A stretch of DNA of 64,000 bases from positions 124,001-188,000 of IMG/VR virus record IMGVR_UViG_3300032242_003291; one strand, given 5' to 3'. Each line of letters begins with the position of its first letter. The first letter of the stretch is position 1. The notes under the pieces were generated by a model. The model ran no database searches. It was not told the DNA's origin and saw only the letters and a list, made by a program, of their open reading frames with translations. Below, one piece after another: positions 10,853 through 60,172 of this stretch. The translations under genes were made by a program, and so were the position numbers.

Positions 10853-10856
10853 ATGT

Positions 10857-10947: not shown

Positions 10948-10948
10948 T

Positions 10949-11398: not shown

Positions 11399-11402
11399 AA
11401 TT

Positions 11403-11439: not shown

Positions 11440-11455
11440 GATTATAAGTTATTAG

Positions 11456-11527
11456 TAGTCCCACCAAGACTCGAACTTGGAACATTTCATTAGAAGTGAA
11501 AAGTTATATCCCTTTAACTATAGGACC
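11456..11527 (-). tRNA. tRNA-Arg(UCU)
   Basis: TTTCA-CTTCTAA-TGAAA anticodon arm. Confidence 0.95.
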
Positions 11528-11555
11528 AATATATTACAAAGATAAGGAAAAAAAA

Positions 11556-12296: not shown

Positions 12297-12307
12297 ATAA
12301 ATAAATA

Positions 12308-13864: not shown

Positions 13865-14097
13865 TATAAAATTTTCTCGTCTTGTTTTTTTCGAGTTTCA
13901 GACTCTTTTACCATTCTAACCCAAGTCAAAATCACATCGATAGGTGCCAACAACCATGACAAAATTACAACCATTAATACGTCCAAACCTGGAGATAAAC
14001 CAATCTGACCATCGTTGTATTCTTTTTTATACTTTACTCCAAGTTGATAAAAACAATAGAGTAAACTGATAATGTAATAACCAATAAAAATATTCAT
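13864..14097 (-). CDS. Small two-TM membrane protein
   Basis: True start MNIFIGYY at 14097; the longer track ORF runs through tRNA genes. Confidence 0.6.
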   Translation of the reverse strand: MNIFIGYYIISLLYCFYQLGVKYKKEYNDGQIGLSPGLDVLMVVILSWLLAPIDVILTWVRMVKESETRKKQDEKIL

Positions 14098-14111
14098 AAT
14101 AAAAATTTTAG

Positions 14112-14184
14112 AGCCTCCTATCGGAATCGAACCAATGACATTATCATTACAAATGATACGCTCTACCTGCTGAGCTAAGGAGGC
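14112..14184 (-). tRNA. tRNA-Thr(UGU)
   Basis: TATCA-TTTGTAA-TGATA anticodon arm. Confidence 0.95.
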
Positions 14185-14189
14185 AAATA

Positions 14190-14294
14190 TTGGAACTTTG
14201 CGGTATTCCAACTGATGGGTCAGTCCCCACACCTCGGTTCGTGAAATGTAAGTTTCCAACCGATGATACTCTTCTGTCTTACACATTAGTATCC
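14190..14294 (-). ncRNA. Candidate pseudoknotted RNA 3' of tRNA-Gly(GCC)
   Basis: GATACT/AGTATC crossed by GTGTAAG/CTTACAT; further stems TCGGTT/AACCGA and TTGGAA/TTCCAA. Confidence 0.6.
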
Positions 14295-14299
14295 AGATG

Positions 14300-14372
14300 A
14301 GCGGAAGACCAGGCTCGAACTGGCCACCCCAACCTTGGCAAGGTTGTGCTCTACCGAATGAGCTACTTCCGC
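14300..14372 (-). tRNA. tRNA-Gly(GCC)
   Basis: CAACC-TTGCCAA-GGTTG anticodon arm. Confidence 0.95.
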
Positions 14373-14378
14373 TTAAGA

Positions 14379-14425
14379 GTGTAGTGGCGGATATCACACC
14401 TGTGGTTACTACACGTTTTATCCAC
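14379..14425 (-). ncRNA. Candidate H-type pseudoknot 3' of tRNA-Gly(UCC)
   Basis: GTGGATA/TATCCGC crossed by GTGTAGT/ACTACAC. Confidence 0.6.
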
Positions 14426-14429
14426 TTTG

Positions 14430-14502
14430 AGCGGGAGACCAGGCTCGAACTGGCCACCTATAGCTTGGAAGGCTATCGCTCTACCGAATGAGCTACTCCC
14501 GC
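14430..14502 (-). tRNA. tRNA-Gly(UCC)
   Basis: TT-TCC-type loop (CTTCCAA) closed by ATAGC/GCTAT; nearly identical body to tRNA-Gly(GCC). Confidence 0.95.
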
Positions 14503-14504
14503 AT

Positions 14505-14612
14505 GTTCCCGTTTTTTCCTCACATTTAGCCCAATCAACAGTGAGACATTGATTGGATTTTGATTATAGAAGCTTACAAGGTTTCCCCATTAAGCCGTTA
14601 CCACGGGCAAAC
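14505..14612 (-). ncRNA. Candidate multi-stem RNA between tRNA-Asp and tRNA-Gly(UCC)
   Basis: Closing CCCGT/ACGGG, GGCTTA/TAAGCT arm with GAAA loop, CCAATCAA/TTGATTGG arm whose loop CTCAC can pair with GTGAG. Confidence 0.55.
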
Positions 14613-14620
14613 TAATTCAG

Positions 14621-14695
14621 CGGACTAGACGGGACTCGAACCCGCGACCCCAAGCGTGACAAGCTCGTATTCTAACCAAGCTGAACTACCAGTCC
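14621..14695 (-). tRNA. tRNA-Asp(GUC)
   Basis: TT-GTC-AC loop, full cloverleaf, G73. Confidence 0.95.
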
Positions 14696-14701
14696 TTTTT
14701 G

Positions 14702-14773
14702 CTCTTTCTGAGAATTACGATATCTCGACCCCATCATTAACAGTGATGTGCTCTGCCTCTGAGCTAAGAAAGA
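14702..14773 (-). tRNA. tRNA-Asn(GUU) with atypical T-loop
   Basis: CATCA-CTGTTAA-TGATG anticodon arm; T-arm GAGAT-ATCGTAA-TTCTC. Confidence 0.85.
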
Positions 14774-14778
14774 ATCTG

Positions 14779-14851
14779 TAGGGAAGACAGGGTTCGAACC
14801 TGCGACCCCTTGGTCCCAAACCAAGTACGCTACCTACTGCGCTACTTCCCT
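14779..14851 (-). tRNA. tRNA-Pro(UGG)
   Basis: CTTGG-TTTGGGA-CCAAG anticodon arm. Confidence 0.95.
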
Positions 14852-21607: not shown

Positions 21608-22576
21608 TTATTGTTCTGGTACTTCTTTTGTAGTTGAAGTTGTATTATTAGTTGCATTTGTGGTATTTGTATTGGTTTGATTTACATTTGGTGTTGCATC
21701 TTCCGTTTCTGATGATGAATAATCTTCGTATCCTGTTTTATTTTGATTACAAATTTTATCTACGTCCGCGTCCGTAAATGTTGTAAAACCTTTTTCAGTT
21801 AATGCTGCCTTTGTTTTAGGTCCAAATTTTCCGTCAGTAGATAGTTTTAAACAACCTTGTACTTTTGCTATAACATCAGACTTACATCCATACTGATAAG
21901 TTCCCGTGCATGGTTTATATGATGTTCCACCACCTGTTCCACCACCGTCAGTTTTTTTCTTATCGTCATTTGTTTTTTCAGAAGCAGCTTTACTTGCTCT
22001 GATTGCTGGTCGTAATGGTAAAAAAACGTAATCTCTCCATTCCGAATCACCATCCAAATCTCCATCTAAATCACTAACTAAATCACCATAAGTTTCTTTA
22101 TAGTTATCAACTAATCCACATAAATCTGGAACTGTGGGTATTTGTGAAAAAACACTTTTAATAGCATCTTCATCTGTACCCAGTCCATCCACCGCGGTAT
22201 ATATTGCATCGGATAATTTATCAAATGTGGCATCGTCTAAAGTTTTTTTACCAAGTTCATTTGTGTTTGTTGAACATGCTTTAACTAGTGCTTTGAAATT
22301 ATCTTCTCTTATACTGCTAGATGACATTCCAACAACTAATCCATAAATTCCACCTAAAACTGCTCCAGGTATTGCACCTACACCACCACCAAAAACGGCA
22401 CCAGCTCCAGCACCTACAGATGCTCCGCCAGCAATATCTTTCCAAATATTTGATTGTTCTGATAAATTAACTCCTGCAGATTCAACGTTTTCAGTTAATG
22501 TTTTTTTTGTATCATATCCCATCATTAATTTTGCTTTTTGTAAAGCTTCTTCGGGACTGTATTTAGGATGTACCAT
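21608..22576 (-). CDS. Protein with glycine zipper, annexin-like repeat and peptidoglycan-binding domain
   Basis: GAGAGAVFGGGVGAIPGAVLGG; AVDGLGTDEDAIKSVF; KVQGCLKLSTDGKFGPKTKAAL. Confidence 0.7.
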   Translation of the reverse strand: MVHPKYSPEEALQKAKLMMGYDTKKTLTENVESAGVNLSEQSNIWKDIAGGASVGAGAGAVFGGGVGAIPGAVLGGIYGLVVGMSSSSIREDNFKALVKACSTNTNELGKKTLDDATFDKLSDAIYTAVDGLGTDEDAIKSVFSQIPTVPDLCGLVDNYKETYGDLVSDLDGDLDGDSEWRDYVFLPLRPAIRASKAASEKTNDDKKKTDGGGTGGGTSYKPCTGTYQYGCKSDVIAKVQGCLKLSTDGKFGPKTKAALTEKGFTTFTDADVDKICNQNKTGYEDYSSSETEDATPNVNQTNTNTTNATNNTTSTTKEVPEQ

Positions 22577-35152: not shown

Positions 35153-35656
35153 ATGTCGTTAAAAGAAGAAATACTAAAACTTAAAGAAAAAGGATATTCT
35201 TATCAACAGATTCAAAAATCTCTGGGATGTAGTAAATCAACAATATCGTATCATTTAGGTGATAATCAAAAAGAAAGGGCTTACAATAGGGTTAAAAAAC
35301 AGAGAAAATTAAATCCTTGGTTGCATAAGACGGAAAAGTTCTTACAAGAATATGAGGGTAAGAAAATAACTTATAATCGAAGAGGTGATTTTGATAGGAA
35401 AAAATTAAAAGAATATTTATCGTCAGTAGATAAATGTTATTTGACGGGCAGACCAATTGATATTAATAATTTTAATACATATGAGTTTGACCATATAACT
35501 CCAAGATTGTTAGGTGGTAAAAGTTCTTTTGATAATTTAGGGATTGCTCGTCCCGAAGCAAATAGAGCAAAAAACGATTTAACCGTTGATGAATTTATTG
35601 AACTTTGTAAAGATGTTTTAGTAAATTTTGGTTATATTGTTAATAAAAAAATATAG
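35153..35656 (+). CDS. HNH endonuclease with N-terminal helix-turn-helix
   Basis: GYSYQQIQKSLGCSKSTISYHL; CYLTG…EFDHITPRLLGG…NLGIARPEANRAK. Confidence 0.85.
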   Translation: MSLKEEILKLKEKGYSYQQIQKSLGCSKSTISYHLGDNQKERAYNRVKKQRKLNPWLHKTEKFLQEYEGKKITYNRRGDFDRKKLKEYLSSVDKCYLTGRPIDINNFNTYEFDHITPRLLGGKSSFDNLGIARPEANRAKNDLTVDEFIELCKDVLVNFGYIVNKKI

Positions 35657-35739
35657 AGAGTTGGCCGAGTGGTTGATGGCACCGCTCTTGAAAAGCGGCA
35701 AGTGTAACAGCTTCTGGGGTTCGAATCCCTAACTCTCTG
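35655..35739 (+). tRNA. tRNA-Ser(UGA)
   Basis: CCGCT-CTTGAAA-AGCGG anticodon arm, long variable arm; first bases overlap the HNH stop codon. Confidence 0.95.
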
Positions 35740-35826
35740 CAAAAATCATAAACATTCAGTACAAATACTGAGTGTTTTTTTTTGACACAAACTTTTATTT
35801 TACTTATATTTTGTAAAAAGAATATT

Positions 35827-38854: not shown

Positions 38855-39478
38855 CTAATCTTTTTTAAGTTTAATCTTCCAATAAACCCCCCCTCCAATA
38901 TAAGGTCTGAATTCGCCAGAAGTACCATCTATAGTCCTATTCGTCGCACCAAGATTAATTTGATATAGGTGGTCTTGTTTAGTTTTGAGTATCAATCCCA
39001 AGCCGACTGAGTTAACCCAATCCTCTTTGCTTACAGCTCCGTTGATACCGAAGAAAACTTGGTTTCTAATTGGAGGTGGGGGTGGCGGTGTTTCTCTTAC
39101 AATCTTTGGTTTGATAGTTGCTGAGAACTTTCTATCTACAATTTTGTTTTGATTTACCGTTTCATTCAAATAAACAAAACCTTGATTATTGGATAATTTT
39201 AGTGTGTCTTTTGTTGTAGTGAAAACCATGTAATCTTTAAGGATTGCTGCGGTATCAACACTTTGTATTGTCGTTACGTAGATTGTTGTATCTTTTATGA
39301 TTGTTTCACCAGGTAAATAAACTGGTACCTCCATTGGAATTGTATCGTGTAGTAATTCAGGTTTAGACGGTACTTCTTGAAAGACAATTTCCTTCTTTGG
39401 TTTTTTTATGTATAGGAATACACATAATCCTAATAGGATTAAAATAATAAAATGTCTTACGTCTAAAATCTTTTTCAT
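38855..39478 (-). CDS. Membrane-anchored exported protein
   Basis: N-terminal TM, D-T-I/T/A motifs, beta-rich C-terminus ending YWKIKL. Confidence 0.7.
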   Translation of the reverse strand: MKKILDVRHFIILILLGLCVFLYIKKPKKEIVFQEVPSKPELLHDTIPMEVPVYLPGETIIKDTTIYVTTIQSVDTAAILKDYMVFTTTKDTLKLSNNQGFVYLNETVNQNKIVDRKFSATIKPKIVRETPPPPPPIRNQVFFGINGAVSKEDWVNSVGLGLILKTKQDHLYQINLGATNRTIDGTSGEFRPYIGGGVYWKIKLKKD

Positions 39479-39479
39479 A

Positions 39480-40922
39480 TTATAATATTACTCTTGAACC
39501 AATCAGGAAGTTATGCAAGATTGGTGAACCTTTCTGAGTTGAACTCGAAAGTTTATAGTTGAAACTAAATCCAAATCTTTTACTTATTTTATAGTCAAAT
39601 GAACTACCAAGTAGGAATGAAAAATTTCTATTTACTAAAGTCTGTCCTGTTTTTGGGTTCCATGCTATCGGAGAATTCATAAGAAATACTTGTGGAGATA
39701 TTGTTAGTTTATTACTGTATTGATAAGGCTTAGTCCAAAACGCAACTGCGGATGTACTCATATTGTAGTCAAAGTTTTTAGAAGAATTTACTAAGAACAA
39801 ATTAATCACACTAAGGTTGTAACCAAATGTTCCGTATTTTGGGTGCGGTTTGATATATGTATATCCCATTAAATTCATATAGTTACCACTTAGGTATGCA
39901 AATGCTGTTGAATAAGAATGTATCGCATTTAATTTACCACCTTCGAAATCCATTTTTGTATATCCACCACCAACAACGAATTGTTGTAGGTTACTATAAA
40001 TCATTGAAGTTAAACTCCAACTTTCATTACCAATTGCTGATGACTTACTAATACCCATAGTAATTGCAGCGGAATATTTTCCATCTGCACCTTGACCTGT
40101 TGTTAAATCAGATGCCAACAACATTGGATTTGGATTTACTTGTTTTTTCTTCTCTTCTTTCTTTTTGTCATCCTTTTTTTCTTCTTTTTTCTCTTCCTTT
40201 TTTTCTTCTTTTTTCTCTTCCTTTTTTTCTTCAGATTTTTTTTCTTCTTTCTTTTCCTCGGTTTTAGATTCTTCCTTTTTTTCTTCAGATTTACTTTCAG
40301 ATTTAGATTCTGATTTAGATTCTGATTTAGATTCTGATTTGTTTTCAGATGAACTATTTTCAGATTTACTCTCAGTTTTTGTTTCGGTTTTACTTTCGGA
40401 TGACGATGACGAAGATGACGATGATGATGACGATGATGATGACGAAGAACTACTACTAGAACTTGTAGAAGAATTATTTCCTGATGGTGGAGGAGGTGGT
40501 GTTGAACTTGCTGATGAACTTGCAGCACTTGACGCTGAACTACTTGCCGCACTTGAAGCAGACGAACTTGCGGCACTTGACGCTGAACTTGCAGCTGCGG
40601 CTGCGGCTGAACTCGCAGCATTAGAAGCGGCGTTTGACGCTGCTTGAGTTACCACGGCAGTTACAACAGTATTTACAACACAAGGAGTTGTTAAAACACT
40701 ATTAACCCAAGTTTGAAACGTTCCGTTATTGATGTCGGCTAAAGTAACAACTCTTGATTTACCTCGTATTACAGCCACCGTACTATTCATACCAAATGGA
40801 ATAGTTACGACATAAACCTTATTATCACAAGGGTCAATATAAGTTTGAGTAATAGTTTGCCCCTCCACTTTTTTAATGGAAAATAACATTATTATTAACA
40901 GGAGGGGAAACCATTTCTTCAT
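39480..40922 (-). CDS. Exported protein with long low-complexity stalk and C-terminal beta-barrel-like domain
   Basis: Signal peptide; Ala/Ser, poly-Pro, poly-Ser and KEEK tracts; amphipathic strands at C-terminus. Confidence 0.75.
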   Translation of the reverse strand: MKKWFPLLLIIMLFSIKKVEGQTITQTYIDPCDNKVYVVTIPFGMNSTVAVIRGKSRVVTLADINNGTFQTWVNSVLTTPCVVNTVVTAVVTQAASNAASNAASSAAAAAASSASSAASSSASSAASSSASSAASSSASSTPPPPPSGNNSSTSSSSSSSSSSSSSSSSSSSSSSESKTETKTESKSENSSSENKSESKSESKSESKSESKSEEKKEESKTEEKKEEKKSEEKKEEKKEEKKEEKKEEKKDDKKKEEKKKQVNPNPMLLASDLTTGQGADGKYSAAITMGISKSSAIGNESWSLTSMIYSNLQQFVVGGGYTKMDFEGGKLNAIHSYSTAFAYLSGNYMNLMGYTYIKPHPKYGTFGYNLSVINLFLVNSSKNFDYNMSTSAVAFWTKPYQYSNKLTISPQVFLMNSPIAWNPKTGQTLVNRNFSFLLGSSFDYKISKRFGFSFNYKLSSSTQKGSPILHNFLIGSRVIL

Positions 40923-41647
40923 TATTTAGCGAATATTCCTTTTTTCACCATTTTACCTAAGATATTTGCACATGCAATATCCAAAGATTTTTTAGTTGCA
41001 ATACTGATTGTGGATTGATTAAATTTAACAGGGTCTACAGTTGCATCAGACAAGAAAGTTAATTCTCTTGTTGTTTTTGCCTCACCTAATCCAGATGCTG
41101 CAATGATTGTACCATTTTCAGCATCTGTGAATCTAACTTGTAAACCAATACGAGTTACCATTAAATTTTTAACACCATCTTTTAGGTTCACAGTTTCATC
41201 TTCTGAAACAGAATAGTCATAACATTCTATTTCAACAAAGTAGTGAGCTAATTTAATCTTACCTCTACCATCTAATTTGTTTTCAGATATTCCAGCTTGT
41301 GATGCTTGGAATTGTTTTACCATTCTGTTCTTAATTTCTGTTTTGTCTTCAGTAAATTCAAAACGATTCAAGTTATCAAGATATTCAAGTACAATATTTG
41401 TAACACCTAAACCTACTCTTTTTTCTTTCAATTCAGGATACATTTCATACATCTCATCATTGATTCCACATTTCAAAAGTTGGATATTTTTCTTTGGTCC
41501 ATTATAATCCAAGAATTGTGATATATCACTTTTAGTTTCAAACGACGCTTTGTAATCTTCTGTTTTAGTTTTACCAATTGTTTGTGCCGATACAATTGTT
41601 GTTGTCCCTAAAAATAATAGTGACAACAAACTTAATTTTTTTATCAT
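40922..41647 (-). CDS. CsgG-like (curli secretion channel family) protein
   Basis: Signal peptide; GLGVTNIVLEYLDNLNRFEF, IGLQVRFTDAENGTII pattern. Confidence 0.65.
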   Translation of the reverse strand: MIKKLSLLSLLFLGTTTIVSAQTIGKTKTEDYKASFETKSDISQFLDYNGPKKNIQLLKCGINDEMYEMYPELKEKRVGLGVTNIVLEYLDNLNRFEFTEDKTEIKNRMVKQFQASQAGISENKLDGRGKIKLAHYFVEIECYDYSVSEDETVNLKDGVKNLMVTRIGLQVRFTDAENGTIIAASGLGEAKTTRELTFLSDATVDPVKFNQSTISIATKKSLDIACANILGKMVKKGIFAK

Positions 41648-41650
41648 AGA

Positions 41651-42019
41651 TTAAATTTTGTTGAAGTCAGTAATCGCCAATAGACTACCATTATTATCAT
41701 ACACCGCAATTCTATAAGCCGAACTTGGTAAAGCTGACGTATAAAGTTTTAGTATATTGTCACCAGATTGTAGGTCTGATGTAGATTTTGAAACAACTCT
41801 GTTTGTAATGTCCGTAATTTTAACGGTTACAGTTTGTGCCGCTTGAGTTTTTACATTCATTGAAACTTCAGTCGTTACAAATGACGTTTGTAATTTAATA
41901 CCCACCGAACTTGTAATTGCTAAGTTGGGGTCAATTTGAGCTGGGTTTGACGCAATAGGTACATTCTTAGTACAACCTACGAGTACAAATAAACCAATTA
42001 AAAAAGATAGTTTTTTCAT
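41651..42019 (-). CDS. Lipoprotein with T9SS-CTD/FlgD-like Ig domain
   Basis: Lipobox LVG-C; VKITDITNRVV…GDNILKLYTSALPSSAYRI. Confidence 0.6.
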   Translation of the reverse strand: MKKLSFLIGLFVLVGCTKNVPIASNPAQIDPNLAITSSVGIKLQTSFVTTEVSMNVKTQAAQTVTVKITDITNRVVSKSTSDLQSGDNILKLYTSALPSSAYRIAVYDNNGSLLAITDFNKI

Positions 42020-42020
42020 T

Positions 42021-42380
42021 TTATTTGATTGTTATTTTAGTTTTATTTATTTGATTATTATTGTTATCCATTAACACCACATCCAAATAAGTTTGAGTCA
42101 ATGTTTTTGTATATATGTTTAAGGTGTTTACACCTACTTTACCAGTGAATTTTTCCCTGCTCACAACTTGATTTTGAATTGTATCAACCATGGTTAATGT
42201 ATATAATCCACTCATCTGAAGGGTAAAATTAATTGTATCACCATTTGATACAGTATTCATCGAGTTATCAAAAAAACTTGATTTGTTAGGCTTAAATTCT
42301 ACAGGTGCATTTAATACTTTTTTACAAGAAATCATAAAAATAGCACAACACAATATTATAATTTTGATACGATTCATCAT
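42021..42380 (-). CDS. Lipoprotein with Ig-like domain, paralogous to 41651..42019
   Basis: Lipobox MIS-C; TLTMVDTIQNQVV…GVNTLNIYTKTL. Confidence 0.6.
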   Translation of the reverse strand: MMNRIKIIILCCAIFMISCKKVLNAPVEFKPNKSSFFDNSMNTVSNGDTINFTLQMSGLYTLTMVDTIQNQVVSREKFTGKVGVNTLNIYTKTLTQTYLDVVLMDNNNNQINKTKITIK

Positions 42381-44272
42381 ATTAATTTAATTTTAAGTTG
42401 TGTTCCATTTTGATTAACAGCGTCAGTAGCATTTACCGATATCAAACCAAATACATTATTTAGTTTTGTTAGTGTTTTGAAACTTATTTTATATGATGTT
42501 TTATTATCCAAAGTTGTGGTACCATCAGTAATCAAAGAACCGACATTTATATACGTTCCTTTATCAGTTCCAAAATTTGATGGATTACCATTTGTTGTGA
42601 ACTTAACCGTTGAAAATTTCAACAAACTATTATCATAGTTTATCATAAATTGTGTACCAACGACCTGTTGTAATGATGGATTCAATGTTATTGTTACAAC
42701 AACAGAATCACCAATTAATTCTGATACAATTGTCGATTGTATTTCATTACTAACACCCATCGTTTTAACCGACATTGTTGTTAGATTATTAGATTTTGGT
42801 GTTGTTGAATGTGATAGATTTACATCTCCCTTCCAAGCCACCGATAAATTTAATGAATCAGTCGATTTACCTGTGTTTATGTCGAATGAATATGTTGAAC
42901 TCAATGGATTAATAAATGTATTCCAATTGGATTTCCCAATACTATCATATCTTGTTTGAGGGATTAATCTCACCGTCTTATTTAGATTGAATGTGTCCAC
43001 TAAAGTCTTCGTACCTGTCAAATTTTGTAATAAAGCGAAACAATCTGCCTCATTAAAAATACCATCATTATTTATATCTGCATTTTGATATTGAATTCCG
43101 TATGTAAATGATGAACCGTTTTGATTTCCAAATAATCCTTGATTTGAATATTCTTGAAACGCCATATACACATCAGAAACTGTTACAATACTATTATAAA
43201 GAGTTGTTAAGTTGTTTGTTGTTGTAAGTGTAATTGATTGTGTTTTGTACACCATATTAGAACTGAATGATACATTACAAGAGAATGCATAATTATTATA
43301 TCCTGCATTTCTTATACTAGAATTGTATAAAGAAGTACCATCCAAAACTTTTGCTAATGTTGATGGAACAGTATATTGAGCCCATGTACCGTCACTTGTT
43401 CTAAACGTCACAGGACCACTATATACATCCAATATTGAGACACTATTAACTGAGGATGGTGTTGTATTCCCGAATTGTCTCATATCAATATAGAGTGTTG
43501 TAACCCCATTGAAAAAATTAACATAACTCCACTCTACTTGTCCTGAAGTAATTTTACCGTTATAACCGTTAGATATTTTTGTACTATCTAAACTTGTTGT
43601 TATATCAATCAAACCTGCAGTACTTAATGGCGAACTAATTGAAAATGTTGTTGGTGTTATACTAGTATTAAAATTAAAATTTGCTACCGCTTTTTTAGTT
43701 GGTGTAGATGGTGATATTGAATAACACTCGTCTGATTGAAGGCTGTATGTGGATTGTGAAGGTCTTTTCCAAATTACATATAGTCCCCAACCTCCTCCTA
43801 CTTGTTGAAATCTTGCCTTCAAAGCGTAAGCACGACCAGCAACTAAATTAATAGTTCCATAACGATAACCACCAAATCCATGTACTCCATAAAATGATGT
43901 TATAACAACACCATCTAATAAAAAATCAACAGCATCATCACCATCTATTGCAAATGTATATGTACCTGTTTCTTTTGGAACAAACCATCCAGTTGTTTGG
44001 ATTCCAAAATAATTCGCACCATTTGGAACACCTGTGAAAAATGTTTGACTATAATACAATGCATTTGATGCTGTTGTTGTTCCAGATTTATAAATGATAG
44101 TACCCGTTGATGTGTTAAATAGATTTACAAAATCAGCATCATTATTTGGATATGTATTTCTAAAACTACTTGCGTTAGTATTATAGATGGTATAATTCAA
44201 ATAACCCACTCCCGACTGGGAGTAGGTTATTGAAAATATTATTAAAAATAAAAACGTTAATAGTTTTTTCAT
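42377..44272 (-). CDS. Exported PA14 + dockerin-like + cohesin-like protein
   Basis: Signal peptide; GWFVPKETGTYTFAIDGDD (PA14); ADINNDGIFNEAD (EF-hand/dockerin); GTQFMINYDNSLLKF (cohesin). Confidence 0.75.
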   Translation of the reverse strand: MKKLLTFLFLIIFSITYSQSGVGYLNYTIYNTNASSFRNTYPNNDADFVNLFNTSTGTIIYKSGTTTASNALYYSQTFFTGVPNGANYFGIQTTGWFVPKETGTYTFAIDGDDAVDFLLDGVVITSFYGVHGFGGYRYGTINLVAGRAYALKARFQQVGGGWGLYVIWKRPSQSTYSLQSDECYSISPSTPTKKAVANFNFNTSITPTTFSISSPLSTAGLIDITTSLDSTKISNGYNGKITSGQVEWSYVNFFNGVTTLYIDMRQFGNTTPSSVNSVSILDVYSGPVTFRTSDGTWAQYTVPSTLAKVLDGTSLYNSSIRNAGYNNYAFSCNVSFSSNMVYKTQSITLTTTNNLTTLYNSIVTVSDVYMAFQEYSNQGLFGNQNGSSFTYGIQYQNADINNDGIFNEADCFALLQNLTGTKTLVDTFNLNKTVRLIPQTRYDSIGKSNWNTFINPLSSTYSFDINTGKSTDSLNLSVAWKGDVNLSHSTTPKSNNLTTMSVKTMGVSNEIQSTIVSELIGDSVVVTITLNPSLQQVVGTQFMINYDNSLLKFSTVKFTTNGNPSNFGTDKGTYINVGSLITDGTTTLDNKTSYKISFKTLTKLNNVFGLISVNATDAVNQNGTQLKIKLI

Positions 44273-45903
44273 TATTCTACAGTCAAATTAACTTTATTAC
44301 CATTACCGTCAATCGCGTCAGATAAGACAGTATAAAATAAACCAGTTGTGTTAGTTAATTTTGTTTTAGGTGTGAAAATTAATGTGTACGGTGTACCTGT
44401 TTTAATTCTTGCTGTTTTTGTTTGGTCTAATGAACCAAATGTGATTCGGTTCTCGTTATTCGTTGAGAAATTAGTAATACTTGGTCCTGCGTCAAACGTT
44501 ACGTTATCTAACGTTAATAAAGTGTTATCGTATTGTAATATAACTTGTAGTCCCGCTAAATTATCTTTTGTTAATGTACCTGTTAATATAACTTTTCCTT
44601 GACCATTAATTGTTGAGGCCAAACTTAAAGTTGCGTTCTGAGATGATGGTGGTTGTGTGTTTCCAAAAGTTGCAATTCTGTCTGTACTACCAACCGATAA
44701 ACCAGTAACTGAATTTGCAACTAACGCAGGATTTGTTGAATTTGAATAATCCAAATCACCTGAATATGCATATGCAAAATCATCAGTTTGAGATGCAGAT
44801 GTTATTGTAATTGTATGGTCTGTTAAAATACCTGTATACCAAGAAGTTAATTTACCTGAAAGGAAACCTATTTGACTTGTAGTTGATGATGGTACTCTTG
44901 TTTTAGAAGTAACATCAATTCCCATAACGTTTGCAAACAAATAATATGCATCGTTATTGTCAAAAACGGTATCAGCAATTGTTACGTGACCTATTGCCTT
45001 TTCTAATGTTGGATACTGAAAATAGTTTGTTGTACCATTCAATCCCACTGAAGAAACTTGTAAAAACGCTTTGTAAGCATCAGACACAGTAATAATATTA
45101 TTCAAATAACTTTTACCTGTTGTTGGAAAAATGTAAACACCAAATTTATCTCCTATTTTTGGAGTTGTGAATGTTGCAATACCTTGTGCATTAAAATTTG
45201 CGGTTGCAATCGGTGCTACACTCCAATTTGTTGTGCCATCAATATTAAGTGGTTGTAATTGTGCTTTCAAATTTACAATACTTGTATCTGTTGATGGATA
45301 TGTAATTCTAACACTGTAAGCGGCAATACCACCTGTTACCGTACCCAAAGATAAAGTACTTTGAGTTGTTGTAACATCTGTAATATTAACACCTGAATTA
45401 TCAACGCCATATGCCATATCTAATTTATGAATATTTGTATAATCTGATTTAGATAATACAACATACTTTTGTGTTGCAATTACACCATCTACCGCAGCAT
45501 CAGTTCTTTGAACTGTTAACTGTGCAACATTCCAATCAGCATTTGATTGATAACTCCAAGGTGTTGCACCATACTGCTTATAAAGATTTTTAACGTCATA
45601 ATTTGCGTTTGCGTTAAAAATATAATTGTTCCAACTTGTAAAATAAGTTTGAACAGAATTACCTTGAGTAAATGTTGTACTGTTATTAATAAATGACAAC
45701 GCCTTATTATTGTATTGGTATCTCAACCAAAAATAACGAGGTAATGTCGTTCCTTTTGAAACGGTATATTTTACTGTAAGTGTATCACCAACCTTATATG
45801 GTCCTGTTTGTACTATGGATTGGTCCACAATTAACTGAGCATTAGATTGTAAACAAACAAAGGAGAATACTAATACTCCTAAAAATTTTGTTATTTTTTT
45901 CAT
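44272..45903 (-). CDS. Exported cohesin-like / dockerin-like protein
   Basis: Start corrected to MKKITKF; LRYQYNNKALSF and AGLQVILQYDNTLLTL cohesin-like ends; ITVSDAYKAF…DNNDAYYLF dockerin-like segment. Confidence 0.7.
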   Translation of the reverse strand: MKKITKFLGVLVFSFVCLQSNAQLIVDQSIVQTGPYKVGDTLTVKYTVSKGTTLPRYFWLRYQYNNKALSFINNSTTFTQGNSVQTYFTSWNNYIFNANANYDVKNLYKQYGATPWSYQSNADWNVAQLTVQRTDAAVDGVIATQKYVVLSKSDYTNIHKLDMAYGVDNSGVNITDVTTTQSTLSLGTVTGGIAAYSVRITYPSTDTSIVNLKAQLQPLNIDGTTNWSVAPIATANFNAQGIATFTTPKIGDKFGVYIFPTTGKSYLNNIITVSDAYKAFLQVSSVGLNGTTNYFQYPTLEKAIGHVTIADTVFDNNDAYYLFANVMGIDVTSKTRVPSSTTSQIGFLSGKLTSWYTGILTDHTITITSASQTDDFAYAYSGDLDYSNSTNPALVANSVTGLSVGSTDRIATFGNTQPPSSQNATLSLASTINGQGKVILTGTLTKDNLAGLQVILQYDNTLLTLDNVTFDAGPSITNFSTNNENRITFGSLDQTKTARIKTGTPYTLIFTPKTKLTNTTGLFYTVLSDAIDGNGNKVNLTVE

Positions 45904-46029
45904 TTTTTTTCTTATTTTAAGAATGGTGTTAAAATCATGCTGAACCCAAAGAAAAGAATCATTAATCCAAATGACACAATTCCGCATGTCAACACAAATT
46001 TTACAATTTCTTGAGTCTTTGTCATAAAA

Positions 46030-46260
46030 TTATTTTTTAGGTGTTTCATACCAAATGTTATCAGGACTATCTTTGAACGTTCCGTCAAATTTCCATTCTA
46101 TTTTATTTATGATGTCTTGTCCTCTTTGCTCTTGTCCAGTTGCTTGCAAATACACACAAAACAATTCAAAACATAATGCCGATACTACCCATAAACAGCA
46201 TAGTTTTACGAAGCTTAACATTATTTGGTCGCTTAGTTTGTCTAAATTTATTGTTTTCAT
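46030..46260 (-). CDS. Small membrane protein
   Basis: Single TM segment, in operon. Confidence 0.55.
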   Translation of the reverse strand: MKTINLDKLSDQIMLSFVKLCCLWVVSALCFELFCVYLQATGQEQRGQDIINKIEWKFDGTFKDSPDNIWYETPKK

Positions 46261-46273
46261 AGTTTTAGTTTTT

Positions 46274-46843
46274 TTATCCTACATTTTCTCTTAATAGTCC
46301 ACATACTAAACATTCTTCATGTCCGTCGTGGTCTGAATCGCCCCAAACGTGGTGACAATTTCTATGGTCAAAATATTCGTCGATAATTCCGTCTCCATCA
46401 TTATCAATACCATCAGCAATACCATCACCATCTTCATCAATTTCTACACCAACTTTTTGTGTAACAGTTTCTGTAGTAGTAACAATTGGTAACGATACTT
46501 GTGGTTGTACTGTAGGTGCAGGAGCATTAACAGGTTCTCCACCTAAGGTACTAGATAATGAAACTCCGTCCTCTTCGTCCATTTTTTGAACCAACATTTT
46601 ATCCTTGTCTTGGTCACTAAACCAGTAATCAATAATTTTACCGTAACTTCCGATGAAAGCTCCTAATAGTAACAATAACAATTCTTTCCATTCTCCAGCC
46701 ATTGGTGATTTAGCTAAAATTGCGGCAAATATTGCAAGAATAGTCCCGAAGAATGTAAATAATACAATGGCCGTAATAAACCATCTTCTTTTCATAACCG
46801 AAAAGAGTAAATCTTTGAATCCCGTGCTTGGTTGGTTTTCCAT
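46274..46843 (-). CDS. Two-TM protein with Ca-binding DxDxDG repeats and Cys/His tail
   Basis: DEDGDGIADGIDNDGDGIIDE; CHHVWGDSDHDGHEECLVC. Confidence 0.7.
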   Translation of the reverse strand: MENQPSTGFKDLLFSVMKRRWFITAIVLFTFFGTILAIFAAILAKSPMAGEWKELLLLLLGAFIGSYGKIIDYWFSDQDKDKMLVQKMDEEDGVSLSSTLGGEPVNAPAPTVQPQVSLPIVTTTETVTQKVGVEIDEDGDGIADGIDNDGDGIIDEYFDHRNCHHVWGDSDHDGHEECLVCGLLRENVG

Positions 46844-46860
46844 AGTTTAATCTTTTGTTT

Positions 46861-47187
46861 TTACCATTGAGCTGGTTTTTCCTTAAACTCATCACCATCT
46901 TTCTTTTTGGGAGTAGGTGATGGTTGTGCTGGTTTTACAGCTTCTTTTTCTTTTATAACAACAGTTTTACTTCCACCAGCAGCTTGCTGCTGTTGAGAGT
47001 TGTTGATAACAATACTCGGTTGAGCTTGTTGTACAGGTTTTTCCTCTTCTTTATGGCCACCACCTAATAATGTTGCTAACCATACACCACCGCCTGCAAC
47101 CGCAGTAGTTAGAGTTCCGATAATTGTTTTTTTTAGACCTGACCATGTTCCGTCATTATGGTCTTTTACTTCTGTTTCTTCTGACAT
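46861..47187 (-). CDS. Single-TM protein with Gln/Pro-rich tail
   Basis: 108-aa ORF in operon. Confidence 0.65.
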   Translation of the reverse strand: MSEETEVKDHNDGTWSGLKKTIIGTLTTAVAGGGVWLATLLGGGHKEEEKPVQQAQPSIVINNSQQQQAAGGSKTVVIKEKEAVKPAQPSPTPKKKDGDEFKEKPAQW

Positions 47188-47209
47188 TTTTTTGTTTTTT
47201 TATTTTTTT

Positions 47210-47701
47210 TTATTTTGTATCAAATAATTTATCCACCAATTTTTCACATGCCTTTTTGATTGCATTACTTAACGATTGTTGGTTAAATTGACCACCATTG
47301 TCTACGGCAAGAGTCGACATAGAAATTTCTGAAGATTCTTCTTCGACAATGACTTCTTTTATTTTTTTATTATCAATTTTTAGAATTCCCTTGAGTCTAA
47401 TAACGACAGACTCTTCGTTTTTGTGGAAAACGGAAATGTTGGACTTTGTTTTAAGAACATCCAAATATACAATCTCAACTGAAACCTTTGTTTTAGATTC
47501 AGGATTTAAGTCATAATCTTTTTCTTGTAAAAATTCTTCTAAAATGTTACGAATACCAAACTCAAGGTTTCTATTTCCTGCAAGATTACCTATTTGAATC
47601 TTGTTGGAAACAGACTCCACGTAAATGTCTTTAGTTGTAATAAAGTTCGTCGGTATTACACATAATATGAGCAATAAAACGACTAGGATGAGCTTGTTCA
47701 T
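47210..47701 (-). CDS. Exported protein with LptE/CsgG-like alpha-beta fold
   Basis: Signal/TM; FGIRNILEEFLQ…LSNAIKKACEKLV; start corrected to MNKLIL. Confidence 0.5.
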   Translation of the reverse strand: MNKLILVVLLLILCVIPTNFITTKDIYVESVSNKIQIGNLAGNRNLEFGIRNILEEFLQEKDYDLNPESKTKVSVEIVYLDVLKTKSNISVFHKNEESVVIRLKGILKIDNKKIKEVIVEEESSEISMSTLAVDNGGQFNQQSLSNAIKKACEKLVDKLFDTK

Positions 47702-47785
47702 TCTATTAGTATCTTGGTATATATAAATACTACTCACTTGGAATATCACAACAAAACAGAACTATTTATTGTAAAATAAATTACT

Positions 47786-48655
47786 ATGTTATTAAAAAAT
47801 GGGTCTCAAGGAGAAGACGTAAAACAACTCCAAATCAAATTGGGTGTTGACCCAGTAGGTAAATTTGGTCCCAAAACTGAAGCAGCAGTAAAAGCTTGGC
47901 AATCCGAACATGGTTTAACCGCAGATGGAATTGTTGGTCCCAAAACTTGGGCTGTAATTATGGGTATTAATGACCAAGTAACAGAACAAGTAAGTGCACC
48001 AGTAAGTGCCCCTATTGTAATCACAGAACCAGCACCAATTAAAAGTATTGGTGGATTAAAATTAGAAAATCTAAAGGGTCATATTCCTGACTCTGTAATC
48101 GCACAAATCCCTGACACCGCATCAAAATTTGAACTTAATACTCCGTTGAGATTAGCACACTTTTTAGCACAATGTGGTCATGAATCAGGTGGATTCAAGT
48201 TAGTTCAAGAAAATCTTAACTATGGTGCTAAAGGTTTATTAGGTTTATTTGGGAAGTATTTCAAAGATGCTGGTAAAGCTGCTTTATATGAAAGAAAACC
48301 TGAAAAAATTGCAAATTTAATTTATGGTGGTCGTATGGGTAATGGCTCCGAACCAACAGGAGAAGGATGGAAATATCACGGACGTGGATTTATCCAATTA
48401 ACAGGAAAAGATAACTATTCAGCTTTTTCTAAATCAATAGGAGAAGATTGTGTGTCAAATCCTGATTTGGTGGCAACAAAATATCCGTTAGCGTCAGCTG
48501 CGTGGTTTTTCAATAAAAATGGATTACATAAAATAGCTGATGGAGGTTCAAGTGAAGCGGTTGTAACACAAATTACTAAAAGAGTTAATGGAGGAACAAT
48601 TGGATTACCTGACAGGATTAAACATTTCAAAGAATTTTACAATTTATTGGCTTAA
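47786..48655 (+). CDS. Endolysin: peptidoglycan-binding domain plus GH19 catalytic domain
   Basis: LKNGSQGEDVKQLQIKL…DGIVGPKT; LRLAHFLAQCGHESGGF…ENLNY…YHGRGFIQLTGKDNY. Confidence 0.92.
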   Translation: MLLKNGSQGEDVKQLQIKLGVDPVGKFGPKTEAAVKAWQSEHGLTADGIVGPKTWAVIMGINDQVTEQVSAPVSAPIVITEPAPIKSIGGLKLENLKGHIPDSVIAQIPDTASKFELNTPLRLAHFLAQCGHESGGFKLVQENLNYGAKGLLGLFGKYFKDAGKAALYERKPEKIANLIYGGRMGNGSEPTGEGWKYHGRGFIQLTGKDNYSAFSKSIGEDCVSNPDLVATKYPLASAAWFFNKNGLHKIADGGSSEAVVTQITKRVNGGTIGLPDRIKHFKEFYNLLA

Positions 48656-49946: not shown

Positions 49947-50627
49947 ATGAAAATTACTTTTATCAGTGACACGCACAACAAACACAACCACCTAACAAGT
50001 AAGGGGATGGGCAATATATTGGGTAGTGGTGACGTTCTTGTACACGCTGGTGATTGTACCAGTATGGGTAAAAGTCATGAAATCACTAACTTCTTGAATT
50101 GGTTTGGTATGACCGATTTCAAACACAAAATCTTTATTGCGGGAAACCATGATTTCGGTTTTGAGATGCACACTGACATTGCAGAAGAGTTCAAAGAAAG
50201 AGGTATCATTTATCTTTTTGATAGTGAAGTTGTAATTGACGGTGTAAAGTTTTATGGTAGTCCTTGGCAACCTGAATTTTATGACTGGGCATTCAATTTA
50301 CCAAGAGGAGAAAAACTTGCTGAGAAGTGGGCTAAAATTCCTGGTAACACTGACATCTTAATTACTCACGGTCCAGCACACGGAATGTTAGATTGGACTC
50401 TAAGTGGACAAAGAGTTGGTTGTGAAGATTTATTTCACAGAATTATGGAAGTTCAACCAAAAATTCATGTTTGTGGTCATATCCATTGTGCGTACGGACA
50501 AAAAAATTTCAATGATGTTGAATTTTTAAACGCATCTGTATTAAATGAAAGATACGAACACGAAAACAAACCAATCAAATTGGAGTTCGATGTAAACGAC
50601 AAGAAAATTGTTGAATATTACGATTAA
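49947..50627 (+). CDS. Calcineurin-like metallophosphoesterase (MPPED-like)
   Basis: ISDTH, VHAGD, IAGNHD, YGSPWQP, ILITHGP, HVCGHIH. Confidence 0.9.
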   Translation: MKITFISDTHNKHNHLTSKGMGNILGSGDVLVHAGDCTSMGKSHEITNFLNWFGMTDFKHKIFIAGNHDFGFEMHTDIAEEFKERGIIYLFDSEVVIDGVKFYGSPWQPEFYDWAFNLPRGEKLAEKWAKIPGNTDILITHGPAHGMLDWTLSGQRVGCEDLFHRIMEVQPKIHVCGHIHCAYGQKNFNDVEFLNASVLNERYEHENKPIKLEFDVNDKKIVEYYD

Positions 50628-54431: not shown

Positions 54432-54719
54432 TTATCCTTCGGACTCTGTTTCGGCAGGTTCTGCTGTTTCAGTTGGTGCTGATTTAGGATTTTTTCCAAA
54501 GATTTTGTCGATAGAAGATAAACCCAAACAACCAAATGCCAACATTGCAACAGCATCTACTAATTCTTTTGATGGAGCTACCTCCATTTTAGTGAAACTA
54601 TTTTGATACATTGTTACACAAAGTGCAACTGTACATAATAGTCCACACAGACGTTTCATAGAAATTGTGCCGTGTTCATCCGAGAATAAACTCTTGATAG
54701 CGCTTAGAAATTTGTTCAT
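54432..54719 (-). CDS. Two-TM protein, possible holin
   Basis: Two hydrophobic helices, charged C-terminus, TATTTATA upstream. Confidence 0.45.
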   Translation of the reverse strand: MNKFLSAIKSLFSDEHGTISMKRLCGLLCTVALCVTMYQNSFTKMEVAPSKELVDAVAMLAFGCLGLSSIDKIFGKNPKSAPTETAEPAETESEG

Positions 54720-59500: not shown

Positions 59501-60172
59501 CTAAATTAAATCAAATAGAATAATTTCTGATTCTATGTTTGGATTAATTTTTATTTCTGATTCTTCAATAAAACTAAGTCCATCACCTTCAATAAGGGAT
59601 AAATCATTTATTGTTGTTTCACCAGAAATAACATATAAATAATATTTGCGAGAATTATTAATCTCAAATGTGAAATCTTCTGTGAATATTCCTGATAATA
59701 ATTTGGCATCTTGTTTGATTGGTAATTTTTCTGTAACATCACAAAACTTATTAAGTTTGTCTTCTCTTGTAAATTGATACCATTCGTGAATTGGTTCTGT
59801 ATCAAAAACGTTTGGTTCAATCCATAACTGTAAATAACGATTTGGTTTGTCAGATGCATTTCCTTCGGTATGTTTTATACTTGTACCTGTACTCATTCTT
59901 TGAACTGCTCCAGCTGGAATATCTAAAATGTTTCCGTGACTATCTGTGTGTCTACAAACTCCTTCAACAACATAACCGAATATTTCCATATTCTTATGTT
60001 CATGAATTGGAACATGACCTCCTGGTTGAACTCTATCATCATTAATTGTTTGAAGATGACCAAAGTTCATATAGTTTGGGTCAAAATAACCAGGAAAACT
60101 AAATGTTCTATATGAATTAATCCAATCTGCTCTCGGATTTCCTCGAGTATGTGCAGGTCTGTAGATTACCAT
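59501..60172 (-). CDS. Pirin family protein (YhhW-like)
   Basis: RTFSF…MNFGHLQTINDD…HEHKNMEI…HTDSHGN…VQRMSTGTSIKHTE…LQLWIEP. Confidence 0.92.
   Translation of the reverse strand: MVIYRPAHTRGNPRADWINSYRTFSFPGYFDPNYMNFGHLQTINDDRVQPGGHVPIHEHKNMEIFGYVVEGVCRHTDSHGNILDIPAGAVQRMSTGTSIKHTEGNASDKPNRYLQLWIEPNVFDTEPIHEWYQFTREDKLNKFCDVTEKLPIKQDAKLLSGIFTEDFTFEINNSRKYYLYVISGETTINDLSLIEGDGLSFIEESEIKINPNIESEIILFDLI

Follow-up and report, generated by a model that had tools for sequence, protein, structure and literature searches.

A 317-kb freshwater phage genome carries a conserved block of eleven genes whose products are predicted from sequence to go to the host cell envelope rather than to the virus particle, suggesting that the phage remodels the surface of the cell it infects. 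Two of the products are modular proteins that combine a predicted lectin head with a dockerin-like loop and a cohesin-like domain, and a homologue in a sister clade of phages ends in a type IX secretion system (T9SS) type A sorting domain. The observation made in the initial sequence-only reading, a run of tightly packed genes encoding exported proteins and divergent from an endolysin, is confirmed. The interpretation attached to it, a late operon in which a CsgG-like pore may supply an export route for a glycan-binding surface assembly, is only partly supported. The block occupies positions 38855–47729 on the minus strand of the window (the full 64,000-nt stretch analyzed here, positions 124,001 to 188,000 of IMG/VR record IMGVR_UViG_3300032242_003291) and the features discussed are as follows.

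47722–47729 (−), TATTTATA, promoter-like motif 20 nt upstream of g1
47210–47701 (−), g1, 163-aa predicted exported protein with an LptE/LpoB/CsgG-type fold, paralogue of g9
46861–47187 (−), g2, 108-aa single-pass inner-membrane protein with a Pro/Gln/Lys-rich C-terminal tail
46274–46843 (−), g3, 189-aa two-helix membrane protein (holin-like topology) whose C-terminal tail carries DxDxDG acidic repeats and a Cys/His cluster
46030–46260 (−), g4, 76-aa membrane anchor, a detached N-terminal piece of the ancestral g4+g1 protein
44272–45903 (−), g5, 543-aa signal-peptide protein with a dockerin-like loop and a C-terminal cohesin-like domain, paralogue of g6
42377–44272 (−), g6, 631-aa signal-peptide protein with a PA14 head, beta-sandwich, dockerin-like region and cohesin
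43703–44221 (−), g6 PA14 lectin domain (residues 18–190)
42998–43216 (−), g6 dockerin-like helical region (residues 353–425), with one canonical D-x-N-x-D-G-x-x-N-x-x-D calcium loop (D399–D410)
42380–42757 (−), g6 C-terminal cohesin domain (residues 506–631)
42021–42380 (−), g7, 119-aa lipoprotein (invariant Cys19) with a small beta-sandwich, paralogue of g8
41651–42019 (−), g8, 122-aa lipoprotein (invariant Cys16), a DUF3244/T9SS-CTD-like beta-sandwich
40922–41647 (−), g9, 241-aa signal-peptide protein with a predicted CsgG/LptE/PelC fold, the most conserved member of the module
39480–40922 (−), g10, signal peptide, two-Cys N-domain of about 70 aa, Ala/Ser then Lys/Glu low-complexity stalk of about 170 aa and a predicted C-terminal outer-membrane beta-barrel (255–480)
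38855–39478 (−), g11, 207-aa N-terminally anchored protein with a poly-Pro hinge, a lineage-specific addition
54432–54719 (−), gene x, 95-aa two-helix membrane protein with a charged tail (holin-like), inside the module in relatives and displaced 7 kb here
47786–48655 (+), endolysin (PG_binding_1 + GH19), divergent neighbour that travels with the module

The gaps between the eleven genes run from −4 to 23 nt, with the exception of about 126 nt before g5, for which the ORF opens at 45987 but relatives start at the Met of MKK. All eleven products have an N-terminal hydrophobic segment by eye, in the form of a signal peptide, lipobox or membrane anchor. Under a strict hydropathy rule 9 of 11 pass, compared to 41 of 383 genes genome-wide, and this is the only run of three or more in the genome. 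Only g7 and g8 have a clear, invariant lipobox Cys, while g9 has a cleavable signal but no Cys. The co-directional block continues for three more genes (38831–37689) that have no export signal. The endolysin is identified by Pfam (PG_binding_1 and Glyco_hydro_19) and PHROG (2.6e-66). Of the 95 copies of TATTTATA in the genome, 36 lie 5–50 nt before a start codon, where 2.8% is expected, an enrichment of about 13-fold. The same ATATTTATA precedes gene x and the first module gene in three related loci (L005, L097 and L090; related loci are numbered with the prefix L). While the motif behaves like a promoter, it could not be linked to structural genes, and the proposed ‘late’ timing of the operon is not supported.

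Among the domain assignments, only PA14 in g6 passes a curated HMM cut-off (Pfam 1.1e-10, 41.9 bits against a cut-off of 24), and the remainder rest on predicted structure or sub-threshold HMM hits. In the AF2 model of g6 (pLDDT 85.6), the PA14 head matches the sugar-bound PA14 of MpIBP and the Flo and Epa adhesins (Z up to 16.5), and its DD motif aligns with the PA14 of RsgI3. The C-terminal cohesin fold superposes on type I cohesins (Z 14–14.5, rmsd 2.1 Å over about 123 residues), though the Cohesin HMM reaches only 22.9 bits in g6 and 21.4 bits in g5 (window 44281–44571) against a cut-off of 24.1; 10 of 35 relatives match. The dockerin-like call is weaker (Pfam Dockerin_1 E 0.078 in g6, with 4 of 35 relatives below 0.01), but this is the most conserved region of the protein, with D367, F372, D410 and G420 invariant, and the head is the least conserved. 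In relatives the head may instead be a C-type lectin (Lectin_C) or LCCL domain. g5 is 25–30% identical to g6 over the C-terminal half. For g8, DUF3244 (1e-4) and Por_Secre_tail (2.4e-3) both fall below threshold, with 31 and 15 of 34 relatives matching, respectively, but it is the best Por_Secre_tail hit in the whole genome.

The g9 protein resembles CsgG/LpoB clusters in a protein atlas (score 0.94), and its AF2 model (pLDDT 67) returned CsgG chains as the top structural matches (Foldseek E 2.5e-6), with structural comparison (VIA) giving Z 10.5–11.7 for CsgG, 10 for PelC and 9 for LptE. More than 5173 homologues were identified. Atlas look-alikes of g1 carry Lipoprotein_16/LptE/LpoB/CsgG, and hhalign of the g1 family against the g9 family gives 96% (E 4e-9). 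In relatives L001, L004, L005 and L097, g1 is the C-terminal part of a 216-aa protein fused to g4. The g10 barrel resembles Phenol_MetA_deg and autotransporter-type barrels (atlas structure TM 0.8) and is 58% identical in L006, and the same architecture occurs in the sister clade. No family hit was obtained for g2, which is conserved in both clades (88 homologues among the loci), or for g11, found only in the window and L003. The sister clade has a short form of g3 (about 115–130 aa) without the acidic tail.

The gene set is conserved as a unit, with shuffled order, in thousands of metagenomic sequences from large phage contigs, including IMG/VR, JGI and ENA contigs of 250–434 kb. The sequence-only reading did not recognize that the endolysin and holin-like genes travel with the module, that gene x is a displaced twelfth member, or that g11 is lineage-specific. 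In the sister clade, the first large protein has both Cohesin (36.8 bits) and Por_Secre_tail (44.5 bits) above cut-off and is homologous to g5/g6 (hhalign 92%). In total, 81 loci have this fused CTD and no g7/g8, while about 10 loci are CTD-less and have g7/g8 directly downstream, exactly where the CTD would be. Further, 65 sister loci pair one CTD-bearing with one CTD-less large protein, both with signal peptides. It should be noted that this pattern reflects one evolutionary transition and not many independent ones, and that g7 and g8 are not significantly similar to the fused CTD (hhalign E 0.01, probability 4%). A T9SS-bearing Bacteroidota host is consistent with the sorting domain, the lack of a Shine-Dalgarno signal in the genome, and a relative that was binned with a Bacteroidetes MAG.

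The closest bacterial counterparts are structural look-alikes in AlphaFold DB clusters named ‘T9SS type A sorting domain-containing protein’ or ‘Cohesin domain-containing protein’. These have a signal peptide and the same order of modules (lectin or other head, beta-sandwich, dockerin-like, cohesin), but are T9SS cargo, themselves of unknown function, in which the aligned part stops about 90 residues before the C-terminus. The g5 and g6 proteins end right after the cohesin, with no CTD, and are encoded by a phage in a fixed set with lipoproteins, CsgG-fold proteins and a barrel. Compared to the cohesin-dockerin pairs of clostridial cellulosomes, the cohesin fold and the single canonical calcium loop followed by a helix are shared, but both modules sit in one protein, the first dockerin repeat is degenerate, no enzymes are attached, the host is Gram-negative and binding is inferred only; a complex prediction for g6C+g5C+g7+g8 returned an ipSAE of 0.12. 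The csgG genes of pelagimyophages and OM43 phage Melnitz (PMC9004378, PMC7029224) likewise encode a CsgG-fold envelope protein without curli subunits, of unknown purpose and discussed in connection with lysis. Those genes are recognizable as csgG by sequence and come with csgF, while g9 and g1 match no CsgG HMM, lack the lipid anchor, show no membrane hairpins and come with cohesin/lectin proteins and a separate barrel. In the LptE-LptD and PelC-PelB export pairs the fold is shared with g9 and g1 (Z 8–10), and g9 directly adjoins and overlaps the gene for the g10 barrel, but this barrel is small (12-strand-type look-alikes) and g9 is not a lipoprotein. The PA14 adhesins (Marinomonas MpIBP and yeast Flo/Epa) share the fold (Z 15–16.5), the DD motif and a head at the tip of a modular exported protein; here the protein is made by a virus in the infected cell. 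The superinfection-exclusion and receptor-masking proteins of phages (T5 Llp, phi80 Cor, T4 Imm/Sp) are also phage-made exported or lipidated proteins that act at the host envelope, but are single small proteins that block one protein receptor and not a module of ten or more genes with lectin heads, and the analogy is functional inference only.

Several alternative roles need to be weighed, of which lysis or egress is a serious rival, though on balance unlikely. In this view, g3 and x, and perhaps g2, would be holin/antiholin, while inner-membrane-anchored g4+g1, periplasmic g9 and the tethered g10 barrel would form an envelope-spanning complex that breaches the outer membrane once the endolysin has cut the wall, doing the job of spanins, which are rarely identified in Bacteroidota phages. 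The endolysin flanks the module here and in most complete loci of both clades, on either side and in either orientation, and lies within 10 kb in 54 of 90 loci, many of which are truncated. Gene x often sits next to it (L059 and L087), the small membrane proteins are interleaved with the periplasmic and outer-membrane parts, and no recognized holin or spanin was seen among the genes scanned near the module. This linkage fits a lysis role equally well, but such a role does not explain two large lectin/cohesin proteins, one with a T9SS CTD in the sister clade, or the variable heads. Additionally, the module proteins have no holin or spanin family hits, a beta-barrel and LptE-fold domains have no known membrane-fusing activity, and in L004 and L005 no endolysin lies within 10 kb. 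Interference with the host T9SS is also unlikely but possible, with g7 and g8 as lipid-anchored CTD mimics that engage the shuttle or translocon and block secretion and gliding, for example to stop display of phage receptors; Flavobacterium phage resistance often maps to gliding/T9SS genes. The sub-threshold CTD/DUF3244 similarity, the invariant lipobox and the occurrence of g7/g8 only where the cargo has lost its CTD are compatible with this, but homology to a real CTD is not significant and the tight coupling to g5 and g6 suggests that they work with those proteins rather than alone.

The CsgG-type pore of the sequence-only reading, an export route independent of the host T9SS for the CTD-less large proteins, is doubtful and rests on analogy. 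In its favor are the CsgG structural matches of g9, the csgG genes of other phages (PMC9004378) and the missing CTD of g5 and g6. Conversely, no CsgG HMM match occurs in the genome even at E 10, g9 has no lipobox Cys, and its hairpin tip is short, polar and rich in charged residues, no longer than in g1. PelC and LptE score nearly as well as CsgG, a CsgG channel passes unfolded peptides and not 60-kDa folded multidomain proteins, and the sister clade keeps g9, g1 and g10 although its cargo has a T9SS CTD. Least likely are virion adhesins such as tail-fibre or head-decoration proteins. Lectin and Ig-like domains are common on virions (PMC7824862) and the variable heads resemble receptor-binding diversity, but signal peptides are conserved on 77 of 81 and 80 of 82 large proteins, g7 and g8 have lipoboxes, the sister clade has a T9SS CTD, there are no PHROG structural hits, and such proteins leave the cytoplasm, where virions assemble.

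The explanation favored here, with moderate confidence, is a conserved cell-envelope module of a jumbo phage that infects a T9SS-bearing (Bacteroidota) freshwater bacterium. What the analysis establishes, from sequence and predicted structure, is the architecture of two Sec-exported modular proteins (g5 and g6) with a variable N-terminal lectin head, a conserved dockerin-like calcium loop and a C-terminal cohesin; their co-inheritance with two beta-sandwich lipoproteins, two paralogous periplasmic CsgG/LptE-fold proteins, a barrel on a long disordered stalk and small inner-membrane proteins (g2, g3, g4 and x); and the genuine T9SS sorting domain on one, but not the second, large protein of the sister clade. 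Expression, localization, binding and biological purpose, including the aggregation, shielding or exclusion proposed in the sequence-only reading, are inferred. It is likewise an inference that the ancestral system sends a cohesin/dockerin lectin to the cell surface through the host T9SS, joined by its CTD-less partner through cohesin-dockerin contacts, and that in this clade the covalent CTD was lost and g7 and g8 took its place as membrane anchors or adaptors. However, g7 and g8 lack an obvious acidic surface-export motif after the lipidated Cys and may face the periplasm, and without a CTD there is no demonstrated way for g5 and g6 to cross the outer membrane, such that they could act in the periplasm. 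The CsgG/LptE-fold proteins, which share a fold with partners of outer-membrane conduits, may work as periplasmic partners of the g10 barrel, as LptE does with LptD and PelC with PelB. The net effect would be a glycan-binding protein layer on the infected cell, made alongside the lysis genes, that either masks surface glycan receptors, allowing for superinfection exclusion and protection of progeny from adsorbing to debris, or makes the cell sticky.

Bases 124001-188000 belong to a single 317,259-bp virus record with 33% G+C that is rated complete, and 19 tRNA genes occur within this window alone. The genes lack Shine-Dalgarno sequences, with GGAG before 7 of 299 starts and A-rich upstream regions, as in Bacteroidota and their phages. 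Near-identical DNA is found only in freshwater, lake, and aquatic metagenomes. The features of the window discussed here are as follows.

47701-38855, minus strand: eleven ORFs (g1-g11) with gaps of -4 to 23 nt, except for about 126 nt before g5; g5 starts at the Met at 45903, as its relatives do
47210-47701, minus strand: g1, a predicted LptE-like domain behind a new hydrophobic leader
46030-46260, minus strand: g4, a membrane helix that is fused to g1 in relatives
40136-40647: Ala/Ser and Lys/Glu low-complexity stalk of g10, which creates long spurious ORFs in two other frames (160-161 aa) that are not genes
38831-37689, co-directional with g1-g11: three further genes without export signals
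54432-54719: gene x, a 95-aa two-helix membrane protein with an acidic tail and a possible holin
7607-14851, minus strand: array of 18 tRNA genes
35655-35740: one tRNA-Ser, next to an HNH endonuclease gene at 35153-35656
5277-6587: a 436-aa protein with M23-type metallopeptidase/endolysin-like PHROG hits, following a TATTTATA motif
21608-22576: a 322-aa protein with weak hits to an endolysin PHROG and to three PHROGs of unknown function, following a TATTTATA motif
59501-60172: a pirin-like cupin protein near the module
49947-50627: a metallophosphoesterase near the module, which is also a neighbor of the module in the sister-clade locus L008

The observation made by the sequence-only reading, a compact block of genes for exported proteins, is confirmed. 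Every product begins with a signal peptide, lipobox, or membrane helix, and under a strict hydropathy rule 9 of 11 pass, against 41 of 383 genes genome-wide, making this the only run of 3 or more in the genome. The export-signal block ends at g11 even if the transcript does not. Among the three genes that follow, the 104-aa and 118-aa products look like paralogues of each other, while a relative's 145-aa protein matches both the 181-aa product (40% identity) and a 160-aa product encoded elsewhere in the genome (61%), such that those two may be related. The divergent neighbor is an endolysin (PG_binding_1 + GH19; PHROG endolysin 2.6e-66). The TATTTATA motif lies 20 nt before g1, and 36 of its 95 genome copies sit 5-50 nt before a start codon, against 2.8% expected, with the sense orientation preferred 36 to 13. 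The same ATATTTATA precedes the first module gene in several relatives, and the motif behaves like a phage promoter. PHROG and Pfam scans of motif-bearing and neighboring genes, aimed at classifying the motif as 'late', as the sequence-only reading had labeled the operon, or at finding structural genes nearby, were uninformative. Sigma-70 promoter and terminator scans were no better than shuffles, and no RNA sequencing run was listed for this phage. Sister-clade modules and their endolysins (L008 7042-7313; 6460 and 7303 in the locus L017) are preceded by a different A-rich motif (TAAATAACAAAAA) and not by ATATTTATA.

Of the domains called in the two large proteins, g5 and g6, only PA14 (PF07691) in g6 passes a curated cut-off (41.9 bits against 24). 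With a 35-sequence alignment the g6 model reached a pLDDT of 85.6, and residues 18-190 of this model superpose on sugar-bound PA14 lectins and yeast adhesins at Z 16.5, with the DD motif aligning to that of the RsgI3 PA14. Residues 506-631 have the nine-strand jelly-roll beta-sandwich of cohesins in the model, with Z 14-14.5 and rmsd 2.1-2.5 A to many type I cohesins. The Cohesin model (PF00963) scores 22.9 bits for g6 and 21.4 bits for g5, just under the cut-off of 24.1, and matches 10 of 35 relatives (best 2.4e-6). The dockerin call (type I, PF00404) is weaker, at E 0.078 for g6 with 4 of 35 relatives below 0.01; one canonical D-x-N-x-D-G-x-x-N-x-x-D loop (D399-D410) is present, the first repeat is degenerate and keeps only the helix, and no dockerin appeared among the top structural matches. 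This dockerin-like region is nevertheless the best conserved part of the protein, while the PA14 head is the least conserved and is swapped for C-type lectin or LCCL domains in relatives. A complex prediction for the C-terminal parts of g6 and g5 with g7 and g8 gave no answer and counts neither for nor against binding.

The g7 and g8 products are paralogous lipoproteins with an invariant Cys. Below threshold, g8 hits DUF3244 (PF11589; 1e-4, 22.6 bits against a cut-off of 25) and the T9SS type A sorting domain Por_Secre_tail (PF18962; 2.4e-3, 18.6-19.4 bits against a cut-off of 27), as well as TIGR04183 (E 0.017), and it is the best Por_Secre_tail match in the whole genome. Of 34 relatives, 31 match DUF3244 at E<0.01 (best 1.5e-5) and 15 score below 0.01 for Por_Secre_tail. 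Neither protein fits the placement of a sorting domain at the extreme C-terminus of a Sec-exported cargo protein, as both are separate lipoproteins with leaders of their own, though they occupy the position directly after the cargo genes. In the distant relative L098 (large protein 30% identical to g6) the g7/g8-like lipoprotein (3408-3746) has acidic residues right after the lipidated Cys (C-E-K-D), which resembles the Bacteroidota signal for surface-exposed lipoproteins and is lacking in g7 and g8 of the window.

The model of g9 (pLDDT 67) has a CsgG/LptE-type alpha/beta fold and matches CsgG first (Foldseek E 2.5e-6, prob 1.0; Z 10.5-11.7), with PelC (Z 10), LptE (Z 9), and FlgT close behind, and protein-language-model features point to the same clan. 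The g1 product belongs to the same superfamily and is homologous to g9 (hhalign 96%, E 4e-9). However, no match to the CsgG family model (PF03783) was found for g9 with hmmscan at E<=1 or in a whole-genome search at E<=10, none of the 120 listed homologues carries a Pfam domain, and no other curli family turned up in the Pfam scans of the cluster. g9 has an Ala-Gln type cleavage site with no Cys in the leader, and, judged on the sequence and a monomer model only, the tip of its long hairpin (146-163) is short, rich in charged residues, and no longer than in the 163-aa g1. A CsgG-like fold is therefore accepted, but the CsgG pore of the sequence-only reading is not. The C-terminal 225 residues of g10 look like a small outer-membrane barrel (predicted structure, TM 0.8 to 12-strand-type families, Phenol_MetA_deg and Autotransporter barrels), preceded by a two-Cys N-domain and a 170-residue low-complexity stalk, although there was no Pfam hit and a whole-genome search with the Phage_OMP model (PF24653) found nothing.

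Among deposited phages megablast found no similarity and tblastn gave only a 92-residue PA14 hit, while PHROGs, NCBIfam, and PADLOC gave nothing usable on the cluster. PDB sequence searches for g1, g9, and the g8 profile gave only chance hits, and NCBI cluster names gave no organism or product names. The proteins have thousands of metagenomic homologues, with more than 1750 for g6 on contigs up to 323 kb (1291 representative clusters), more than 5173 for g9 at 79-92% identity among the top 120, and more than 3020 for g8. Close relatives keep the set in another order, with g4+g1 as one fused 216-aa protein followed by g5, g6, g7, g8, g2, g3, x, g9, and g10, and with unrelated flanks. In this window, g2-g4 have moved upstream, the g4+g1 gene is split, and gene x lies 7 kb away behind the same ATATTTATA motif. 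The split falls right after the conserved '...NIWY' motif of what is a 216-218-aa protein in relatives (membrane helix, then the LptE-like domain), g1 has gained a new hydrophobic leader, and g2 and g3 lie between the two halves. g11 occurs only in the nearest relative. The module is therefore conserved as a unit, the absence of which had been named beforehand as grounds for refutation.

A search of bacterial genomes with the g9 alignment identified a g9 homologue (56% identical) on a 254-kb contig binned in a Bacteroidetes MAG, though MAG labels are weak host evidence, as short contigs carrying g9 homologues (L007, L009) are binned into MAGs labeled Thiobacillus and Micavibrio and are probably mis-binned phage fragments. 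On this contig, of the sister clade, the module reads: endolysin, small lipoprotein, a 642-aa protein, g2, g3, g9, a g10-like barrel protein, a second dockerin-bearing protein, another barrel, and a g1-like protein. The 642-aa protein (L008 7313-9241) is homologous to g5/g6 over the dockerin-like and cohesin parts (hhalign 92%) and has a signal peptide, Cohesin (36.8 bits), and a terminal Por_Secre_tail (44.5 bits against a cut-off of 27, residues 561-639), both domains above cut-off. Eighty more IMG/VR loci of this clade were labeled with iterated HMM searches, and all 81 have the fused C-terminal domain (CTD) while none has a g7/g8-like gene. The loci of the window's clade, about ten including L097 and L098, have CTD-less large proteins followed directly by g7/g8-like lipoproteins. 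In 65 sister loci one CTD-bearing large protein is paired with one CTD-less large protein, and both have signal peptides. A shape search of the ESM Atlas finds only viral clusters, which carry either Lectin_C/LCCL/Cohesin or Por_Secre_tail/Cohesin/Dockerin_1, with Por_Secre_tail in 72-98% of members, whereas the bacterial look-alikes in AlphaFold DB are T9SS cargo whose aligned part stops about 90 residues before the end.

Two conclusions follow. These proteins leave the cytoplasm, so they are not virion parts, and the hosts have a T9SS, which is restricted to Bacteroidota (PMC11611037). It should be noted that the fused/detached contrast is one evolutionary transition, and that g7 and g8 are not significantly similar to the fused CTDs (hhalign prob 4%), so a recent gene fission is not shown. 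The 'detached CTD' of the sequence-only reading therefore rests on position, phyletic complementarity, and sub-threshold similarity, not on demonstrated homology.

Collectively, the analysis establishes an exported, co-inherited set with lectin, cohesin-fold, dockerin-like, CsgG/LptE-fold, and predicted barrel parts, with T9SS targeting in the sister clade, and the interpretation offered by the sequence-only reading is supported in part. The parts are well characterized, but the purpose of the module is inferred, as are sugar binding by the PA14 head and binding between cohesin and dockerin-like modules. In the inferred mechanism, the CTD-bearing protein would be displayed by the host T9SS and joined by its CTD-less partner through cohesin-dockerin contacts, g7 and g8 would replace the covalent CTD in this clade as anchors or adaptors, and g9 and g1 would assist the g10 barrel as LptE and PelC assist their barrels. 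The result would be a glycan-binding layer that masks receptors or makes the cell adhesive, and the variable heads on a conserved assembly core fit a target that varies between host strains.

Part of the block (g2, g3, x, and perhaps g9, g10, and g1) may instead be lysis machinery. The endolysin lies within 10 kb in 54 of 90 loci, many of which are truncated, and on either side of the module, while g3 and x have holin-like topology and x often abuts the endolysin, though neither has a holin family hit. This possibility does not explain the lectin/cohesin cargo. A CsgG-pore export route and jamming of the T9SS by g7 and g8 were also considered, and the virion-protein (adhesin) and chance-cluster readings were rejected on the signal peptides, the T9SS CTD, and the synteny. 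A more far-reaching possibility, which is not excluded but is considered unlikely, is that a widespread clade of freshwater jumbo phages has turned a T9SS-secreted cohesin/dockerin lectin into a split system, in which the sorting domain is supplied as stand-alone, lipid-anchored CTD-like proteins (g7, g8) that either act in trans as adaptors to carry or anchor CTD-less cargo at the host surface or act as decoys that seize the host T9SS. Together with the phage-made CsgG/LptE-fold proteins and a stalked barrel, this would be the first virus-encoded cohesin-dockerin surface assembly and the first viral manipulation of type IX secretion.

Phages place single proteins in the host envelope, such as exclusion lipoproteins and, in marine myophages, csgG. 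Phage csgG/csgF without curli subunits are described for pelagimyophages and phage Melnitz, with unknown function (PMC9004378), and those genes are recognizable as CsgG by sequence, while g9 and g1 are not. A review of jumbo-phage adaptations mentions virion lectins but no cohesin, dockerin, PA14, or lipoprotein modules (PMC7824862), and no paper describing phage T9SS cargo, phage cohesins, or phage cohesin-dockerin pairs was found in the library searched. The module described here is a proposed form of phage-encoded envelope remodeling that is common in nature and apparently undescribed, in which a block of ten or more genes, conserved in thousands of metagenomic sequences from large freshwater phages, encodes predicted sugar-binding proteins with cohesin and dockerin-like modules that carry a genuine type IX secretion signal in the sister clade. 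That would mean that viruses of Bacteroidota use the T9SS of the host to dress the infected cell, with consequences for phage adsorption, cell aggregation, and particle attachment in lakes. The module would also offer a natural experiment on what a T9SS sorting domain does when it is detached from its cargo.
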